A stretch of DNA of 62,265 nt, the filler included, from Trichosphaerium sp. ATCC 40318 (taxonomy: Eukaryota > Protista > Tubulinea), in NCBI GenBank assembly GCA_038496445.1. It is 3 parts of 3 records of this genome, joined end to end, with 100 filler letters (N's around TTAATTAATTAA, not from the genome) between each part and the next. Parts side by side here need not be neighbours in the genome. Positions count along the whole stretch, not along the records: positions 20,755 to 50,755 come from JALMLS010000245.1; 2 more parts are not named here. The stretch is one strand, 5' to 3'. How positions within the stretch are numbered: the first letter of the stretch is position 1; each line of letters opens with the position of its first letter. The position numbers and the translations under genes are program-made. Below the pieces are notes generated by a model. That model searched no databases. It saw only the letters and a list, made by a program, of their open reading frames with translations, and was not told the DNA's origin. This document shows, piece after piece, positions 20,755 through 40,313 of this stretch.

Positions 20755-20870
20755 ACTGTTTATCAATACTGTGTTGCTCATGGCCACCACTGTTGTACAA
20801 TACTGAACAACAAGAAAAAAAAAAGCAATTTATTTGAAATACAACTTGACGGTGAGTACAAGCTGAGTTA

Positions 20871-22412
20871 TCACAAAAAGTCACGTATAGTGTACGATTG
20901 GTATGGTGAATGTTGTTCTAGATGTTCATATGCAGGTTTTTTTCCATTAATTATTAAAGTACCACAAGACCAAACAAAGAAATAAGACATTCTTGCTGAA
21001 ACAGAATCACATCTGCAATGCTTAAGAGGTCCAAATAAATACAAGATACCATAATCAGTGATAAGAGGACAATCATTTGCAGTCAAATTAGTGACTCCAT
21101 AGAGAGATATAATGCTGTCATCCGTAATATTTTGACATCCAGAAATATCAAGTTTTTCTACACCAACAAGATATTTTAATCCTTTATCTGTAATTTCACT
21201 ACAATTAACCAAACTGACATCACGTGCTCCTGAAATATACTTCAAACCTTCATCTGTTATAAAAAAACAGTGATCAAGTTTTATCTCTGAAACACCTCCC
21301 AGTGCTTTCAAAGACAAGTCGGTAATTAATGTGCAATTTTTTAGATTTATCTTGTATACTCCACGTAATGCTGAGACACCTTCATCAGTGATATAGTCAC
21401 AGCCACTTAGTGATATTGTGTGAACACCTGCAAGGTATGATATACCCAATGAAGTCACATTGAAACAGTTATCTAATAGAATTGTATGTACACCTTTAAG
21501 ACACTTAAGACCAATATCTGTTATAAATGTATCACAAATGTCGATTGTGTGAACTCCTGATAGCGCCTTCATACACTTATCACCAATGTTACAACGATTC
21601 AAGTTGATAGTGTGTATACCAGAAAGCGCTGATACACCTTTATCAGTGATATAAGGATTCCTGTGGATAATAAGCTTTTTAACACCTGCAAGTGCTTTCA
21701 ATCCAACATCTGTCAGATTATTTGATCCAAAGTTGTATCCAATAGGAGCAAGCTTTGCTTCTTTGACACCTGCCAAAGATGCGTATCCTTCGTCAGATAC
21801 TTTGTCACAGTTACTGATTCTTATTGTTTTAACACCAGCAAGTGCTCCAACACCTTTGTTAGTGATGTTGTTGCAAAAAGATAAGTCAATGGTTGGCACT
21901 CTAGAAATAGCTTCCAGATTACTGTCAGTAACACACTCCCCAATCAATGATATTTCTTTGAGTCTAGAGAGTGATTTTAGACCTTTTGGAGTGATTATTT
22001 CATTAGGAACAAAGGAAAGCTTGGTAATATTCGTAAGCGCTGACAAACCAACATCCGTGATAGTACTACGACCAATATCTAGTGTGCGGACGTTTCCGAA
22101 GTGTGTTATGACCTCATCGCTGATTTTTCTGATGTCCATCCTCAGATTATACGCTCCGTAAAGAAGAATGGCTATTTCTGGCCTCAATAGCATTGATACA
22201 TGAATATGGGTTGACTTTAAAAGTCCTTTGTTCTTGCAGAGGTCCAGTACGTTGTAATTTTTTGCGTCAATGTTAGCAAAGCCAATATCATTTCGTACTA
22301 CGTGTAGAAACTGTTTACAGGTCAAAGAGATAGATTTCAGATTTGAAGTGCGTAAGAACATCAGGATTTCGCATACCATCTCTCGTGGTAGCGATGACAT
22401 AAAGCAAGTCAT
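20871..22412 (-). CDS. Intronless F-box + cysteine-containing LRR protein (513 aa)
   Basis: FMSSLPREMVCEILMFLRTSNLKSISLTCKQF (F-box) followed by many LxGVxxIxLxxCxxITDxG repeats. Confidence 0.9.
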   Translation of the reverse strand: MTCFMSSLPREMVCEILMFLRTSNLKSISLTCKQFLHVVRNDIGFANIDAKNYNVLDLCKNKGLLKSTHIHVSMLLRPEIAILLYGAYNLRMDIRKISDEVITHFGNVRTLDIGRSTITDVGLSALTNITKLSFVPNEIITPKGLKSLSRLKEISLIGECVTDSNLEAISRVPTIDLSFCNNITNKGVGALAGVKTIRISNCDKVSDEGYASLAGVKEAKLAPIGYNFGSNNLTDVGLKALAGVKKLIIHRNPYITDKGVSALSGIHTINLNRCNIGDKCMKALSGVHTIDICDTFITDIGLKCLKGVHTILLDNCFNVTSLGISYLAGVHTISLSGCDYITDEGVSALRGVYKINLKNCTLITDLSLKALGGVSEIKLDHCFFITDEGLKYISGARDVSLVNCSEITDKGLKYLVGVEKLDISGCQNITDDSIISLYGVTNLTANDCPLITDYGILYLFGPLKHCRCDSVSARMSYFFVWSCGTLIINGKKPAYEHLEQHSPYQSYTIRDFL

Positions 22413-26115: not shown

Positions 26116-28959
<2,844 letters not shown>

Positions 28960-29110
28960 ACAATAATCGACACTAAGTCTTTTTTTATTTATTGCAGATA
29001 TCAATACAAAAGCAGCAATAAAATCAGTTTTATCAGTTCCTTTACAATACTAAATGTCACTATCACGTGATATCGTTTTTGTTTTTCGGAATGTTCGCGT
29101 GCATGCATCC

Positions 29111-29164
29111 GTCTAGATCCCGTAACCCTACAGTTAAGAGCTTCCCGCTCAACCAACTGAGCTA
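29111..29164 (-). pseudogene. Degenerate tRNA-Lys(CTT) fragment
   Basis: Ungapped 43/54 match to the tRNA at 40253-40306; acceptor arms lost. Confidence 0.7.
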
Positions 29165-29280
29165 AGGATAAAAATATGTTTATTAAGCCAAAAAGGCTGG
29201 CTTAAAGTACTTCACTTCGGTAACAAGATTGTTTCTTTAATCTTGACAAACAGTGTCCGTCGACCGTTTGTTCTTACAAC

Positions 29281-30405
29281 ATGGCTCGATACTCTAAAGA
29301 GGTATATGAACCCTTTTGATTCTTTTCGTTGAGCTTTGCTTTGATCAACGCTATACTGCCAAGACTACCATCATACCAATAGCATGCAAAATAGCGCTAA
29401 CAGAGCAAAGCATGAAACGAGTAATTTGATATATTGCATTGTTGTCTGTTAGCGGTGTTGTATGTTCTTCGTAGTCTTTGGCTATGCACTTTTAAAAAAA
29501 CTTCTTATTCTACAAAACTCTCCTGTTGTACAAAAAGCCTTTCTACCAAAGAAAATCACTCAATCTACTTCTTGCACGCTGACCAATTCGCAATCTACGT
29601 GTTTCTAAAACTCGCTTGTTTTGTATTCTCTAGTATCGTGTGTTCTGACCCAGACATTAATTAGATTAGCTCATTAATACCTGCAAATAACGCATTACTA
29701 CTACTCCCAATGGAGATTCAAATAGCAATAATCTACAGAGACTTCGAGGTTTACCTGAAATGGCCTGTCTTATCAAAGTACACGGCACTAACAACAAGGT
29801 TTGACGGCAACATCGAGAAAAACGGCAAATGGTTACAACGGAAGGTATTCTACGAAAACAATACACTCACAGCAATGATTGTATGTCAAGAGTTTTGGAT
29901 GCGCGGTCAACTACACGGTGAGTTTAAGTTATGGCATGACAACGGTGTCTTAAGGAACCTCTGTTATTTTGTCCACAATAAAAATGAAGGAGTCTACCAG
30001 GAGTGGTATGAGAGCGGCGAATTGTATTCTCAGTATAATTACCGAGATGGTAAGAGAGAAGGTGAGTACACTGAGTGGCATGAGAACGGTCAGTTGATGG
30101 AACTGTCGTATTTCCATCTAGACGGTCGATGCGGGCAGAAAAAGAGGTGGTATGAGGACGGACAGTTAATGGAGCTGTCTTATTTTGTAAATGGTGCTCA
30201 AGTGGGTCTGAAGACTCAGTGGCATCGTAATGGTATCTTGTATGAAAAAACCACTTATGAGAATGGTGTAAGAGAAGGAGAGCATAAGCTTTGGCATGTT
30301 AATGGTCAATTATGGGAAAAGGTTTTTTACGTAAATGGTAAGCCAAAGGGAGAATACAAGAGATGGTATTTTGATGGTGAACTGGAGAAGGCCACAATCG
30401 TGTAA
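29281..30405 (+). CDS. F-box-like + MORN2 repeat protein
   Basis: Probable short first exon MARYSKE (29281) spliced in phase to ISSLIPANNALLLLPMEIQIAII; repeats GEYxEWHENGQL..Y.NG. Confidence 0.8.
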
Positions 30406-33475: not shown

Positions 33476-33673
33476 TGAATGCAGTTAAATGTCTCATTAG
33501 TTTTTGTAAAATATTGTGTAGGTGTAAAGCAAATAAAAACCAAGTATGTCCATAGTAGGGAATGATAGCTAGTAAAAAAGAAATGACCAAGGTGTCACTT
33601 TTTGGTCATTAAAGCAGTAGAAGGTGAAATGAGCTTGCTGAATTGTTGAGTGTCAATTCCAAAAATGAGTGTG

Positions 33674-33719
33674 GATACATCAACTGCATAGTTGAGAGCC
33701 GTGCGCTCAACCAACTGAG
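33674..33719 (-). pseudogene. Second degenerate tRNA-Lys fragment
   Basis: Ungapped 36/46 match to the tRNA at 40258-40303; several changes are CpG to TpG/CpA. Confidence 0.65.
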
Positions 33720-33793
33720 ATGAAGCAAATAAATATTTATTTATTAAACAAGTATTTATTAAATTTATTTTGCATACTCAGTTAACTGAGTTG

Positions 33794-33799
33794 AAAAAA
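33794..33799 (-). terminator. Pol III terminator (T6) of the interrupted tRNA-Lys gene
   Basis: TTTTTT on the minus strand immediately after discriminator base G73 (33800). Confidence 0.8.
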
Positions 33800-33812
33800 C
33801 TCCCGACGAGGG
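33800..33812 (-). tRNA. Displaced 3' end (positions 61-73) of tRNA-Lys(CTT)
   Basis: Minus strand reads CCCTCGTCGGGAG; GTCGGGA pairs with the 5' acceptor strand TCCCGGC at 40313-40307. Confidence 0.88.
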
Positions 33813-34716
33813 GAGTGTGATCTTAAACGTTCCATTGAGAGCAACCAGCTCAAACAAGACCAGTCATTTTGGGTGTTTTTCAGCTCAGTTGGGTCGTTTT
33901 AAAGGGGACAATGAGTTGTACAAAAATTGTTTCAAATTGTACATTCCACGCACCGAATTGTAACCAAATTTCTACCAAAATACCGCGATTGACGAAACGG
34001 TGCGCAAAACCAATACGTGCATGGCGAAGACAAACAAAGGTACGTGAATAGCGTTTGTTAAGTGTTACCAATTTGGTTTCAAAGTTAGCCGTTATTGGTT
34101 AATAACCAGTATTAGAGTATAAAACCGCGATACCATGCGTAGAGGAAGCGTTTAGCGACTACAATAATTAATTGTAGTTTTTTTTGTACTAAATCGAACG
34201 CATGTCACTCAAAACAAGCTTGCGCAGGTTAGTGCACGTTACAGACGCGCCACCGGTATGTGATTGGCACTAAATTTAACTAATAACGTTATTAGAGCCA
34301 AAATACAAAAAAAGGAGAAAAATCCTGCCGCTTGACCAAAATTGTAGCGTGCACGGTTTAGACGCGTATGCCGGAGTATGAAGGTTTTTTTTTTCTCAAA
34401 AAAAGCGAGTTTTTGCTTTTGCTCTAATTTGTAAATAGGTGTATATGGCCTACATATACCACGTAAACGCCAGTGGAGTACAAATTGGAAAAGTGGCAAA
34501 AAAAAAAAGAGGCGATTTGCCTCTTTTTGAAAATACAAAAAAAACCCGCGTAGTTTTTTACCTTTTCATCACAGGTGTAAGCCACGTCACTTCTAATACG
34601 AAAAAGTGACTGCATAATCAATAGAAGGAATATTTAGAGGTATGTTTATGTTGTAGAAAAAAAAAAACAAAATAAAAGCAATGTTAAAACTAACGTTCTA
34701 CTTTATTGGACACAAA

Positions 34717-37700
34717 TCACTGATTCTTGCAAGTCGTCTGCCACAACCCTATCATTGTGTGCGCGTGCCCACGCTTCATGCCACAACTTACCATGGCGTC
34801 CACACTTGTAAACTCCATGTACTCATACCCTTGCTCATGTAGAGTCTTTGCAACTTCTTCATCATAAAATGGGAATTTCAAGTAAAACGGGTGTACTGGC
34901 GTCATGCCTGAAAGTGACTCATGATGATTAGGAAACGGATTGATATCAAGCTCATCCGCTTCCATTGGTGTAGCTACTAGTGTTAAACAGGGTAAGGGAG
35001 TACAAAGTGTTACTTACGCATAACAAAGGTTGCTGGATCAATGCGATCAGGATCAATACTATCATCGCTAAGTTCATCAGATGAAATCTCATGTAGCTGT
35101 TCATCCAGCTGTTCAGAGATGCCATCAAATTCTGCAGTGTCAGCTCCCTCGTTAAGAAACTCCACTAGGTACAGTTAGGGTACATAGCAACTATGTAGGT
35201 GCAGAGGATTAATGCTCATACGTGGGTTGACATCTGGAAGCATTGCATCTTCTAATTCCACATTTTCGATTTGCCCTGCTTGCATCCGTTCTATGTCACT
35301 TGCAGACGGCTTAGGACAATATTCACCAGCGTCAAGACCATATACTGTTCGTCTCAATATGCCTTGTCGTAACCAAAGAAGCTTGGAGATGTACAGCTTT
35401 GCATTCTCTCTTTGATTATTCACTGCTATTCTCACACGATCATAATCTTTCTTGTCTTTATCTGTGGCCCCGGCTGCCATTTTTTTAATGAGCGCTCTCT
35501 CACGGAGGATTGGTTTGTATTTACTGTAGGTACAGAGCAGTGTTTCAAGGACCTCTTCAGGTATGTTCCTCTTCTTGAGTCTACAGTATAATTAGATGCT
35601 GAACTAATATAACAGAACAGGAAAAGCAACGTACTTTCTTAGAAAGTATACTCTTGAGCCATTCTTTGCACTGTACTTCTCTTTTGTTCGTATTTTGCGA
35701 TACATGGCCTTAGTTACCTTCAAGCAGAGGACACGGTCCATGTTGACAATGTCTACATCATAGGAGGTGTCGTCAAGCGTTACATGTGGCTTCAAAACGC
35801 GTAGCATCTCATCGTAATCAAACATTGGAGGAAGCTCAACGATATCCTCTGTCTGCATCCTGTTGTCATCCTTCCAGTACTCCATCATCTCTTCAACGTC
35901 GTCTGTGTCTACAGGAATAGGGTTGAGGTCTACGGCAGTGCCTATTTGCCCATTCAAGCACAAGGAACGTAAGAGCAACAAACGACCGACAATAATCTTG
36001 GCTTCCCTCTGTCCTTGAGCTGCTTTACGTTTAGCACAGATGATGTCACCTTTGGGAGCATTGCGGCTAATGAGGAGCTCTACTCCTTCAACAGACTGGT
36101 TGTACTTTGAGCAATATTGTCTTAAAAGCTTCTCTTTGTCATCTTGGATTAATACCTTGGCGTTGAAGCTGCAGATAACATTAATACAGGCAAGTACGTG
36201 CTTAGTGTGACTTACTATCTTTCAAAGTATAATTTCTTGTTCTTCATAATCCCGAGTTCCGTCTTCAACCCTTTAGGAATCCTCAACTCAAGAAACCTAT
36301 CCAATGAATATGTTCCATCAAATGAGCGTGTCTTGGATATTATCTCAACAGATATAACTCTTCCAATAGCTGCCATAAGCAACCTTTTGTGGACTCGCAT
36401 CTTTTCCTTTAAACTTGCAACTCCTTTTTTCTTTTTTGGATTGTTCCTGTGTTTTGTTATCTGCCGTTGCATTTTGAGAAGTGTAGAGTTGTTGTTGAGC
36501 GTTGTTTTTTCGTCATCAGTTGAGTACAAGTGGTATCTAGAGTGAGCGTCAATGGTTGTTTAAAAATGAACTCAAAAACTCACTGTTGGATGTAGAATCT
36601 TTTTACGACAACATCTCCATGGCTTTTGGTCTTGTAGTGAAGTGAACCATCTATAGAGGTGTAAGTAAAGACATAAAGGAATACAGGTAACGTACGGTTA
36701 GCCAACAGTTTGTTGTATGACGGAGACATGCTGAGGATCTGCGATCGCATCACGGGACTGAGAGTAGCAGTTGTCATTTTAGTAGCACCATCTTTAGGTA
36801 CATGTGGCATGTACCACGACCAAGCCATCTCTCTCGCTGTATAACGGCGTGGTTGCTTCTCTGCAAATAATGAGGTTGTATTCATGATTACCTCATGAAA
36901 GTGAGCATAGTAGACGTCCATCACCTGGTGAATTAAAGTCAGATAAACCAAAAAAAAAAAATACAAAATATTTTGGTTGTTTTTTTCTTTAAGTGTACCT
37001 TCCCGTCCTTTGACCACCCTGCTTGACGTGCTAGCATGTCTCTGTCAATAGGACGATTTTCATCTGCACAACGGATAATATGGTTCAAGATTAAACCACG
37101 TCTTGCTCCTTTGGAAGTTATTTGTCCCTTTTTGAAGCCGGCCTTAATTCCAGCAACTGTTACATCACGTTTTAGAGTCTGTGTTGTAATTGGAACCTTG
37201 GGCTCCCATTCATTTCTGTGACTGTTGATTTTGCAAAAGAATGGCTCTTCTAGCATTGCTTCTTTGATCTTGTAAGGTCTTCCTACTTCCCGGCTCTTTT
37301 CAATGGCATTGCAACTGGCAAGGTACTGCATTATAGCAATGACAGGGCAAAAAGATTTGTCAACGTGATTGCGATTGAAGGTCTTGTATTGGTTACACTG
37401 TGATGGAACCTTATCCCATGTAAAAAACACTTCAATAGCCATCTGAACAAAAACAAAGTTAATACAAGAAACAAAAGAGTTGTATTGTAAACGGTACGTA
37501 CATCATCATCACTACAACCAGCTATAAAGTTTATGTGTCTCAACAAAAGCACTGGGGCATCTTTCTTTGTTTGTGGACAATAAGAACCCACCCTCTTGCC
37601 GACAATGGCCTGCATAATCATGTAGCAGCGGAACCTCAAGTGTTTGAGGGATTGGACATCATAAGAGTTTGCTAGGATGTGCTTGTTCATGTCAGTTGTT

Positions 37701-39276
37701 ATGGGAAGTTTGTTTATCTTCTCCACATATCTCGGAAACATTTTATTCCACTCTTTTGTGTACCAAGTCTCTAGCTTATTCACTAACATAGAAATAAGCA
37801 ACAAAACACAAACGAAAAATGTAAAGCAAAAGCAAAGAGCTTACACCCAGTCGAGAAAGCCTTGTTCATGAGAGGAGATTCTCCAGAGTCTGAATTATCT
37901 CTTTGCCATCTACAAAGTGCTTTGGCATAGTACTGAACGGTTTTTGGTGTCAGAGGGCGTTTATCATATGTTCTGCTGCAATCTTTCAGGATAATTTTAA
38001 ACCACATGTTCAAGTTTGGTATAGTGAGAGGCATAGCTTGCTGTAACTCTTCATTTGGAGCTTCGGCTACCAGTTTTTCATTGTAAGCCTTGATGAACGC
38101 TTTCCAACGCTTGTAGACAAAGATTGTGCCCTTACAGGTGCTGGGAGCATAGACGACATCATTGGGAATCTCTGACATCATAGCACTAACAACACAGTTA
38201 ACTTAGAGCAAAGGAAAATGGTGGTAACAAACTTACAGTTCTTCGACAGTGTGTTGGCTGAGTAAATCTTCATATGAAATGTTTTGGGATTGCGCATTGG
38301 TTGTGTCTGCTTGTTGTGGTACTTTGGATACAGGAAACATCTTTTTGCGGTACTGGATGAGAGTTAGTACTTGACAATCAAAAAAAAAGGCCAGTACATA
38401 CCTCTTGAATCGCTGTTATCTGTTCTAGTACCAAAAATCCAATGTCGCCAGCGTCTGGATGTTCTGAGGCAAGGTTTTCATAACCTCTATGCAGACACAA
38501 CCATAACGAAAGCTTTCGCATGGTATCTTCTTGTGTAACAGGACTTCGTTCATAGGCATGGCGTACAATCTCTAAGTTGGGAAAGGATATGATCTTGCTC
38601 CAATCCAAAGTCTTTGGGAAAAAACAATCATCCTTAGGGCCAACCAAGAATGTATCAATTGAAACTGGGTTGTCGACAATCTACATAAGTTAAAACAAAT
38701 CAGTAAAGTGCTACAAAGTGGGATAAAAGCATACCAAGGGCGTCACCTGACTTGCAATAGGAATAGTTGGCGACTGCACCTGCTCTGATATAAAGGCAGC
38801 TCTTGCTTTGAGTGACAGAGAGAGAGGACCAGCTATTTCAGGGCTTTGTGACCTTATACGTTTTGATCTCCTTGGATTTGATTTGCTAACATGTTCTTTC
38901 CTATGAGATCTACCACGCTTTCGCTTCATCCTGCTAGGAATTAGAGTAAGTCAACAATTCCAAGATACTTTTACAAAGGCCTTGTACCACAAGTATGACA
39001 ACTGATCAATGTGAGGACTGCATGCACGCTGGAGAGCCTTTTTGGTAGAATGAGAAAACACACGACAAATAATTAACAATCACATTTTTATTGCAGATTA
39101 CTTTTACATTGAAGAGTGCCAACAATTATGCCTAAAACCATTAGGACACAAATGAAAAGATAAAAGGTTAAGGGTTTGTGTTTTGGGGTTGGGTGACAAT
39201 CACGCTTACAAAAAATATGTACTCTTGTAGTTTCTTCTTTGACTTTATTAATAGCTTCGGAATCAATCAACTTCAT
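34717..39276 (-). CDS. Large multi-exon tyrosine recombinase (5' exons uncertain)
   Basis: Core-binding-like APSTCKG..YKRWKAF..PKTVQYYAKAL; catalytic motifs LRFRCYMIMQAIVGKRVGS (R), FTWDK (K), FCPV, EPFF, ITSKGARRG (x-x-x-R), RQAGW (W), VMDVYY (Y); long C-terminal extension. Confidence 0.85.
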
Positions 39277-39939
39277 CGCAAAAGCCCTACAACAACACTA
39301 TCTCAATATCTTAAAAGTCACAATCATGTGATTATAATTTATCAAACGTGATTTTGTACTTCCGTGGTTTCTGGCAACAAAACTGATGAGATTGTAGTGT
39401 ACGTACGTTTAGGTAACTTGCTGTATTGCACAAATAATTGTAACAACATAGCGTATAGTAAAAAGGTGTTAATTGTGGTTGCGGATGTATAAAACAACGC
39501 TAAAAGGTACGCAGAACAAAAATACCACGATTTGTAGTAACAACGTACCTTTTGTCGCATGTGACAGGAGAAATGCCGTTACGCACCTGAAATGACGCGG
39601 CTGTTGTTTGTACTTAAAACTGTTACATTCCGGCATAATGTAACAGTTTTCGCACGTATGTTACTTTACCAACAGCATACCACTGTTCCGTTACTTATTT
39701 ACTACCTGTAGAAAAAATGGTAAGAAATTGTAAACACGTAAGTTTGTGCACCTTTCCTTTCTCACGTGGGTGTGCTTGCAATAATGGTAGCTTGATTGCT
39801 ACCATATATGCTTACATTGTATTTGTACATTACAATGTAAGCGCACAACTCAGCATAATTGAGCTACAAAGTGCTAAAACCTGTAATTTTCCCATTTTGG
39901 GCCAATAAACGAGGAGCGGCCAGCTCAAATTTCCTTGCC

Positions 39940-40211
39940 AACTCAGTTATTTTTTACAACTCAGTTGTGCGCACAACTCAGTTGAAATTTTGTAACTCAG
40001 TTGGCACTAACTGAGCTACATGCGCAACTGAGCTTAAAATTTTAACTGAGTTAGTGACGTTAACTCAGCTGAAAATGTAAAACTCAGTTGATGTCGTAGC
40101 TCAGTTAACAACGTTTTCAGCTGAGTTTTGGACATCAACTCAGTTAAAACTTTAGCTCAGCTGTTGCCAACTGAGCTGAAAACCAACTGAGTTTTCCCCG
40201 ACAACTGAGTT
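39940..40211. repeat. Array of 16 quasi-palindromic ARCTSAGYT motifs at about 17.5-bp spacing
   Basis: Copies start at 39940, 39958, 39975, 39994, 40009, 40026, 40044, 40062, 40081, 40098, 40119, 40137, 40154, 40169, 40185 and 40203. Confidence 0.92.
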
Positions 40212-40246
40212 CAAAGTACTTTTGCTAACCAATATACCACTCACAA

Positions 40247-40313
40247 ACGAGGGTCTCGATCCCTCGACCGTACGGTTAAGAGCCGTACGCTCTACCAACT
40301 GAGCTAGCCGGGA
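40247..40313 (-). tRNA. tRNA-Lys: tRNA-Lys(CTT), positions 1-67, interrupted
   Basis: TCCCGGC TA GCTC AGTTGGTA GAGC G TACGG CTCTTAA CCGTA CGGTC GAGGG ATCGAGA CCCTC GT; D, anticodon and T arms pair perfectly, but the following TTGTG cannot complete the acceptor stem. Confidence 0.93.

Follow-up and report, generated by a model that had tools for sequence, protein, structure and literature searches.

A 6.4-kb intron-bearing element inside a tRNA-Lys gene of Trichosphaerium: a possible tRNA-specific, Crypton-like element of a protist

Background

Few DNA transposons of eukaryotes are strictly specific for one target, and the locus described here raises the question of what kind of element, mobilized by which class of enzyme, came to lie inside a tRNA-Lys(CTT) gene of the protist Trichosphaerium sp. 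ATCC 40318 (Tubulinea). The stretch of DNA that was analyzed, hereafter the window, is 62,265 nt long (from assembly GCA_038496445.1) and all positions refer to it as a whole; the locus lies in its 30-kb piece, positions 20,755–50,755 (JALMLS010000245.1). An initial annotation of the sequence had proposed a tyrosine recombinase (YR) element, integrated into the tRNA gene in the manner of a prophage. The precise insertion of a DNA element at tRNA positions 61–67 held up on analysis, as no reverse transcriptase (RT) is encoded and introns are kept, whereas the assignment of its enzyme to the tyrosine recombinases was not established. In our assessment there is an even chance that the insert is an autonomous, DNA-mediated and site-specific mobile element of a eukaryote, integrated into the tRNA-Lys(CTT) gene, and the evidence on the borders, the repeats, the gene and its product is weighed below against the alternatives.

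Results and discussion

A tRNA-Lys gene split at the T-stem/acceptor-stem junction

On the minus strand, the 5′ part of the gene comprises the acceptor 5′ strand (TCCCGGC), the D-arm, the anticodon loop (CTCTTAA) and the T-arm (GAGGG-ATCGAGA-CCCTC), then GT; it runs from 40313 to 40247 and ends in ...GAGACCCTCGT, after which unrelated DNA (TTGTGAGTGG) begins. The 3′ part (33812..33794) reads CCCTCGTCGGGAG (CCCTCGT-CGGGAG), then TTTTTT. The two junctions overlap by exactly 7 bp (ACGAGGG on the plus strand), the adjacent bases being unlike on both sides (A/C upstream, T/C downstream), and the insertion point is thereby placed where the T-stem meets the acceptor stem, tRNA positions 61–67. This heptamer is rare in the 30-kb piece (two occurrences on the plus strand, one on the minus strand), and the chance of a 7-bp overlap precisely at the break is about 4^-7 (~6e-5). 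The insertion and its exact borders, as read directly from the sequence, agree with the split and the shared heptamer that had been claimed in the initial annotation.

When 33813–40246 and one heptamer were removed in silico, ARAGORN called a canonical 73-nt tRNA-Lys(ctt) at the empty site, with a complete 7-bp acceptor stem and the T6 immediately after the discriminator. In the occupied sequence no tRNA was called by the same program, nor at either junction, which bears out the earlier claims that the rejoined halves form a canonical tRNA and that integration leaves the gene unrestored. The Rfam tRNA model matched 40306..40249 with 43.1 bits, above its gathering score of 29, and of the model only positions 8–63 were aligned. 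That a tRNA-Lys gene is split by an insert at this locus cannot reasonably be chance.

Because the 5′ fragment keeps both of its RNA polymerase III (Pol III) boxes and the first T4 stands 64 nt into the element (40182), a chimeric Pol III transcript of ~130 nt, spanning the tip of the element, is expected. As a separate observation, this fragment has ATCGAGA as its T-loop, with A at position 54, which elongator tRNAs do not usually show.

Termini, sub-terminal repeats and a repeated 9-mer

No terminal inverted repeats (TIRs) were seen when both tips of the element were read, and the repeat search found no long terminal repeats in it. The tips carry 9-nt imperfect inverted repeats (7/9), namely GAGTGTGAT at the left one and ATACCACTC, which stops 4 nt (ACAA) short of the right one; at a hypothetical circle junction they would enclose an 11-nt spacer with the heptamer. 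Farther inside, at an identical distance from both ends, lie 19-nt sub-terminal inverted repeats that include D-arm sequence of the target tRNA (Table 1).

The near-palindromic 9-mer AACTSAGYT has 31 strand-wise matches in the window versus 2.4 expected, a number that no shuffle reached. The 17 copies that form an array 5′ of the gene fold as a 265-nt foldback (-71 kcal/mol as DNA, z = -8.95). Both the sub-terminal repeats and the D-arm/A box of the tRNA (AGCTCAGTT at 40305..40297, 41–43 nt 5′ of the core) include this 9-mer, and a palindromic pair of it adjoins the tRNA terminator outside the element. As the motif is found in both the D-arm and the 3′ flank, the heptamer of the empty target is bracketed by it on both sides.

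Two further observations concern these motifs. The array is a long imperfect palindrome present at one end of the element only, and it could equally be a nested insertion resembling a foldback element or a miniature inverted-repeat transposable element, a promoter or enhancer that serves the candidate recombinase gene, or a platform to which proteins bind. The 17-mer AACTGAGTTGAAAAAAC in the pair outside the element resembles the right sub-terminal repeat (AACTGAGCTGAAAAC), and the pair may be either a feature of the tRNA cluster that is mimicked by the element or a footprint left by the element when it was active before.

No second copy or paralogue of the element was found within the 30-kb piece, and no other copy or relative among metagenome and viral contigs (JGI, IMG/VR). 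The junction 17-mer had 19 matches in metagenome contigs, all of them due to chance (flank identity ~25%).

A single gene with spliceosomal introns

The element holds one intact gene in the orientation of the tRNA, and no second convincing gene was found in the insert. It starts with an ATG at 38929, and its basic N-terminus (MKRKRGRSHRK...) resembles a nuclear localization signal (NLS); an alternative gene end is offered by an acidic tail that terminates near 35012. At least 10 introns are spliceosomal, 40–74 nt in length, with GTAAGT, GTATGT or GTACGT as donors and YAG as acceptors. Searches of family libraries and sequence databases were made exon by exon and with a spliced 88-aa C-terminal segment, while our own profiles of the Cre family and of CryptonF were compared with the spliced protein. 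In the family-library search RT, RNase H, rve, resolvase and HUH domains were absent from every exon, and no exon had any Pfam domain above threshold. Since introns are retained and no RT domain is encoded, the element moves as DNA; a YR retrotransposon of the DIRS, Ngaro or PAT type was excluded on the absence of RT and RNase H domains and of long terminal repeats.

For the core exon (exon C), phmmer against 1.84 billion representative proteins returned no homologue at E<=0.001; its single match was a repetitive bacterial adhesin. A search of 5.8 billion clusters gave no candidates for this exon, and tblastn against phages gave nothing. The C-terminal half of the protein (~600 aa) is uncharacterised, and on a reading of the model it appears helical and charged, unlike an RNase H fold.

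Table 1 Features of the split tRNA-Lys gene, the inserted element and its surroundings (positions in the window)
Feature	Position	Strand	Basis
Element enclosed by the two repeats, 6,434 bp	33813..40246	.	direct reading, repeat search
tRNA-Lys(CTT) 5′ part, positions 1–67; A box and B box intact	40247..40313	-	direct reading, Rfam, ARAGORN on empty site
Same tRNA gene, 3′ part: positions 61–73 (33812..33800) and T6 Pol III terminator (33799..33794)	33794..33812	-	direct reading, ARAGORN
Left 7-bp direct repeat ACGAGGG, tRNA positions 67–61; crossover core or target-site duplication	33806..33812	.	direct reading
Right 7-bp direct repeat ACGAGGG	40247..40253	.	direct reading
19-nt sub-terminal inverted repeat, left arm (TGTTTTTCAGCTCAGTTGG), starting 61 nt from the left end	33874..33892	.	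repeat search, arms 95% complementary
19-nt sub-terminal inverted repeat, right arm, ending 61 nt from the right end	40167..40185	.	repeat search
17-copy array of the near-palindromic 9-mer AACTSAGYT, spacing 15–21 bp, 5′ of the gene	39940..40215	.	motif count, repeat search
Palindromic 9-mer pair AACTCAGTT.AACTGAGT, outside the element, from 13 nt 3′ of the core, adjoining the tRNA terminator	33777..33794	.	repeat and motif search
Only gene of the element, ~13 exons, 1,150–1,260 aa; 3′ end beyond 35184 uncertain	34721..38929	-	three-frame reading and intron search
Exon with candidate box I (YMIMQAIVGKRVGSYC); candidate catalytic Arg374, codon at 37594	37502..37782	-	exon model, motif chain
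Core exon (exon C): candidate Lys415 (FTWDK), CPVxxxxxYL helix 436–445, KGARRG (Lys515/Arg518), Trp547 (QAGW)	36999..37442	-	exon model, DUF3435, Foldseek, motif chain
Exon from VMDVYYAHF; candidate catalytic Tyr557/558, codons 36912/36909, 10–11 residues past Trp547	36584..36924	-	exon model, motif chain
Intronless 513-aa F-box/LRR_6 protein gene	20871-22412	-	–
Multi-exon FAD-linked oxidase gene (alkyl-DHAP-synthase-like or D-lactate-dehydrogenase-like)	26600-29000	+	–
MORN_2-repeat protein gene	29710-30405	+	–

Evidence for and against a tyrosine recombinase

We consider it fairly probable that the catalytic domain of the protein is a YR, and most likely a very divergent YR domain occupies residues ~200–565; the hints that point to it are weak but mutually consistent. 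The candidate catalytic set, as picked out in the translated gene model, would consist of Arg374, Lys415, Lys515/Arg518 (KxxR for HxxR), Trp547 and Tyr557/558, with R-K-[H/K]xxR-W-Y spacings of 41/100/29/10 versus 28/88/23/9 in Cre. A chain of four position-specific scoring matrices (PSSMs), derived from published YR alignments (box I, the CPV helix, HxxR, and G[WH] with a downstream Tyr), picked residues 364, 430, 512 and 543, the same sites that had been predicted by eye, with all four blocks positive and a score of 17.4 bits. This score was reached by 10, 11 and 7 of 3,000 global/local shuffles (p~0.003), the reversed sequence scored -1.6, and controls from the Cre family scored 30–44 bits in the same chain.

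The spacing of CPVxxxxxYL is the same as in DIRS1 and in ZMYM-type YR domains, and a hidden Markov model (HMM) of the CPV block placed the open reading frame (ORF) of exon C second among 339 natural ORF pieces. Among 24,736 Pfam families the only match for the core exon was DUF3435, a eukaryotic YR family (E=0.18, 11.1 bits against a cut-off of 25.8), and the alignment runs in the expected register from the CPV helix to KxxR (KGARRG). In a Foldseek search with a low-confidence model of exon C, Cre ranked first of 350,542 PDB chains (E=2), seven further Cre chains and an S. aureus integrase stood in the top 50, and the order of helices and hairpins predicted in the low-confidence model is in keeping with that of a YR catalytic domain in its C-terminal half.

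Several results weigh against this reading. A YR was not recognized by Pfam PF00589, PF16787, NCBIfam, PHROGs or phmmer against the PDB, and PF00589 matched no exon, nor the spliced 88-aa C-terminal segment. Apart from DUF3435, the exons and this segment drew nothing but noise below threshold from these libraries. Aligned pairwise with Cre, the protein reached z=2.6. An HMM of the Cre family (46 sequences) and one of CryptonF/NDC10_II (67 fragments) both scored the spliced protein within the range of shuffles, and the P=0.055 obtained with hhalign was attained by ~12% of shuffles. A box-II HMM based on eight eukaryotic YRs, with demonstrated power across families (Cre family 35–43, CryptonF ~39, Tn916 14.5, lambda/XerD 9.4 and S. 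cerevisiae Flp 5.8 bits), gave the protein -0.2 bits, and only K. lactis Flp (-0.0) was as low among the controls; with a score at this level the protein, if a YR, would match the Flp family in its divergence. Lys stands in the place of His-II, the spacing from R to W is 6 residues above the usual, and the motif-chain test was designed after the motifs had already been seen. On the structural side, every Foldseek match has E >= 2, the model of the N-terminal domain has no YR matches, and AlphaFold2, run without an alignment, returned pLDDT (predicted local distance difference test) values of 37 (core exon) and 53 (N-terminal domain), too poor for a verdict on the fold. As regards the element itself, there is a single copy, its 7-bp repeat is 1 bp above the 4–6 bp reported for Cryptons, and its architecture fits equally well a cut-and-paste element resembling Dada, in which the 7 bp would be a target-site duplication (TSD).

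Of the gene as first annotated, its being the only one in the element and its spliceosomal introns stand, whereas its product as a YR was not established by profiles; the comparison with Crypton and DUF3435 recombinases yielded the DUF3435 and Cre resemblances given above, but the CryptonF profile and all standard profiles failed.

Comparison with known recombinase-mobilized elements

Cryptons (Goodwin 2003; Kojima & Jurka 2011) are YR DNA transposons of fungi, oomycetes, diatoms and animals, without TIRs and with repeats of 4–6 bp (PMC3212892). The element is like them in being a DNA element with a single gene (often intron-containing in Cryptons), no RT, no TIRs and a proposed circular intermediate, and its CPVxxxxxYL helix and GxW...Y tail are shared with YR domains of the Crypton and DIRS type. 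It differs from them in the length of its repeat, in KxxR for HxxR, in the foldback with 17 motifs, in a much longer protein and in scores below the thresholds of the CryptonF (PF16787), DUF3435 and DUF3504 profiles. Cryptons have at most a pentanucleotide preference (e.g., TATGG), their insertion into structured-RNA genes is unreported, and no tRNA-specific Crypton was found in the literature searched, including reviews from 2026.

Starships are likewise YR-mobilized elements of eukaryotes, with a DUF3435 Captain at one end and with cargo genes (PMC10104507, PMC9156397). If the YR assignment holds, the two would share this mode of mobilization in addition to short direct repeats, a site preference and the sub-threshold likeness to DUF3435. 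Membership among the Starships was rejected, as DUF3435 stays below its cut-off (11.1 vs 25.8 bits) and the element, at 6.4 kb vs tens to hundreds of kb, consists of a single gene without cargo genes. The host, of the Tubulinea, is also no Pezizomycotina fungus. Flp of the yeast 2-micron plasmids resembles the protein in having Trp for His-III and an extremely divergent box II; it is plasmid-borne and inverts plasmid DNA, unlike a chromosomal integrative element, and no sequence similarity between it and the protein was detected.

The tRNA-integrating phages, integrative and conjugative elements and islands of prokaryotes also use the 3′ half of a tRNA gene, with an identity segment of ~7 bp beside the dyad symmetry of the T-arm. 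The element, in contrast, has no PF00589 match and its gene has spliceosomal introns. It carries the 7-bp core only and not the 3′ segment of the tRNA, so that the tRNA gene stays split, unlike what follows from a prokaryotic attP. On these grounds (no PF00589, tRNA unrestored, only 7 bp shared) an integrator of the prokaryotic type was rejected.

A possible route of excision and integration

The reading that we favor, for which the chances seem to us evenly balanced, is that of a Crypton-like, circle-mediated and tRNA-specific integrative element with a heptamer core at the T-stem/acceptor junction; within it the reversibility, the circle, the part played by the motif and the YR chemistry are all inferred. 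The element would excise as a circle through recombination of the two 7-bp repeats, by which the tRNA gene would be precisely restored. At integration, strands would be exchanged between the 7-bp core of the circle, flanked there by the 9-nt imperfect inverted repeats, and the identical heptamer of the tRNA. The choice of the site may be aided by AACTSAGYT, which is present on the element in the 17 copies of the foldback and in the symmetric sub-terminal repeats, and on the target in the D-arm/A box and the 3′ flank; the motif could thus act as a signal for targeting as well as for synapsis. An on/off switch of the tRNA would require both a YR as the enzyme and a precise excision, and such a switch would be unlikely to matter much physiologically if tRNA-Lys(CTT) is multicopy.

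With somewhat less confidence, and tentatively, we suggest that the element is the founding member of an undescribed eukaryotic family, defined by a Flp-divergent YR, a 7-bp core in tRNA-Lys, guidance by a 9-bp motif and a precise excision that rebuilds the tRNA.

A possible cut-and-paste transposon resembling Dada

The initial annotation knew of no described protist family of this kind, and in this it had overlooked Dada, which uses tRNA genes, makes 6–7 bp duplications and occurs in Perkinsus. A transposon of that kind is the alternative to be taken most seriously, although we regard it as rather unlikely: the transposase would be of an unrecognizably divergent or new DDE type with a 7-bp staggered cut, the heptamers would be a TSD, and the tRNA would be left unrestored on excision. 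The transposase would then bind at the sub-terminal inverted repeats and at the repeated 9-mer, and arrays of short sub-terminal motifs in either orientation are a typical mark of transposase binding in hAT and CACTA-type elements.

Dada elements are eukaryotic DDE transposons that lie inside tRNA, U6, U1 and 5S genes, including those of the protist Perkinsus (PMC3706591, PMC8869645). They measure 4.7–11 kb and have one gene of >1,000 aa with ~11 exons, no TIRs and a TSD of 6–7 bp; their short sub-terminal inverted repeats are equidistant from the duplication and have the same sequence in the target RNA gene (PMC3706591). With this published layout (PMC3706591) the element agrees point by point: it was inserted into a small-RNA gene, has a 7-bp repeat and no TIRs, and its 19-nt inverted repeats, 61 nt from each end, carry D-arm sequence that is also in the target. 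Its size, its many-intron gene for a protein of >1,000 aa and the logic of a "safe haven" are shared as well. Since Dada has the same architecture, the 7-bp direct repeat can equally be a TSD, and the failure of the YR profiles also speaks for a transposase.

The protein, however, speaks against it. All Dada transposases have a CCCC zinc finger at the N-terminus, a CCHC one at the C-terminus and DxxH (PMC3706591), whereas the gene model has no CxxC, Cx4C or [DC]xxH at all. HMMs for the DxxH block and the E block, made on the alignment of the Dada authors from fish, Ectocarpus and Laccaria families, recovered left-out families (fish, brown alga, basidiomycete) at 40–85 bits but stayed at noise on the gene model and on every six-frame ORF of the 30-kb piece, and tblastn found nothing in the element with four conserved Dada-U6 blocks and nothing with the zinc-finger block. 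Membership in Dada was rejected on these grounds. For a DDE transposase of another family, no exon has a Pfam DDE, hAT, MULE, P or rve domain, the C-terminal half in our reading of the model is helical and charged and not RNase H-like, and all the weak hints that are present favor a YR. The insertion site at 61–67 is also unlike the known Dada sites in tRNAs, which are nucleotides 8–13 or the anticodon stem (PMC3706591, PMC8869645). Judged from its sequence, the element appears to behave like Dada and yet to be no member of it.

Other alternatives

Quite improbable, in our view, is that the enzyme belongs to a class that is undescribed for eukaryotic transposons, neither YR nor DDE, with its YR-like motifs being coincidental. 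An orphan core exon, without a homologue among the 1.84 billion representatives, the 5.8 billion clusters, the metagenome and viral contigs or the phages, and exons without any domain above threshold, would be in keeping with such a class. Against this, the motif chain, the DUF3435 match and the top rank of Cre in Foldseek would all have to be coincidence, and orphans are common among fast-evolving transposon proteins that are searched exon by exon.

That nothing mobile is involved, and the tRNA gene was split by a rearrangement, by foreign DNA captured at a break or through an artefact of assembly, is very improbable: there is one copy only and two decayed tRNA-Lys-like relics nearby imply that the region was rearranged before, but this account fits poorly with a 7-bp overlap exactly at the break and a perfect reconstruction, with sub-terminal inverted repeats at identical distance from both ends, with an intact, open 3.5-kb multi-exon gene that has an NLS-like start, and with AACTSAGYT being common to element and target.

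Implications

A review from September 2026 names only Dada as specific for small-RNA genes (PMC13565253), and the locus would be new in either case, be it a Crypton-like element that is tRNA-specific and has diverged strongly, or one like Dada whose transposase is new. Should the favored reading of a YR with a heptamer target in the tRNA be true, the prokaryotic strategy of integrating into tRNA genes would reach into eukaryotic nuclei, and the element would be to eukaryotes, introns included, what prophage integration is to prokaryotes, convergent with Dada in the choice of target and a second, mechanistically different answer to the "safe haven" problem. It would also provide a compact, self-contained and nuclear-active integrase with a natural landing site, of interest for genome engineering. 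An enzyme outside both the YRs and the DDE transposases would represent a new transposase class.

Genomic context

The host piece has a GC content of 38%, short spliceosomal introns, and F-box/LRR and MORN-repeat genes (Table 1). A collection of 15 billion proteins contained none of the exact products of three flanking ORFs.

Two decayed tRNA-Lys-like sequences were noticed on the minus strand. The one at 33655–33725, ~65 nt downstream of the terminator of the split gene, is 77% identical to positions 8–46, has CTC for CTT in the anticodon loop and has lost its similarity in the T-arm; it ends in ATCCACACTC and ATTTTT, resembling the left tip of the element (GATCACACTC), and may be a tandem paralogue or the remnant of an older insertion or deletion. 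The other, at 29105–29170 (…TAGCTCAGTTGGTTGAGC…CTCTTAA…GGGATCTAGAC), received no call from Rfam at E<=1, and its similarity to the tRNA ends at about position 60, where the insertion site of the element starts. Together, the two relics suggest an old tRNA-Lys gene cluster on the minus strand.

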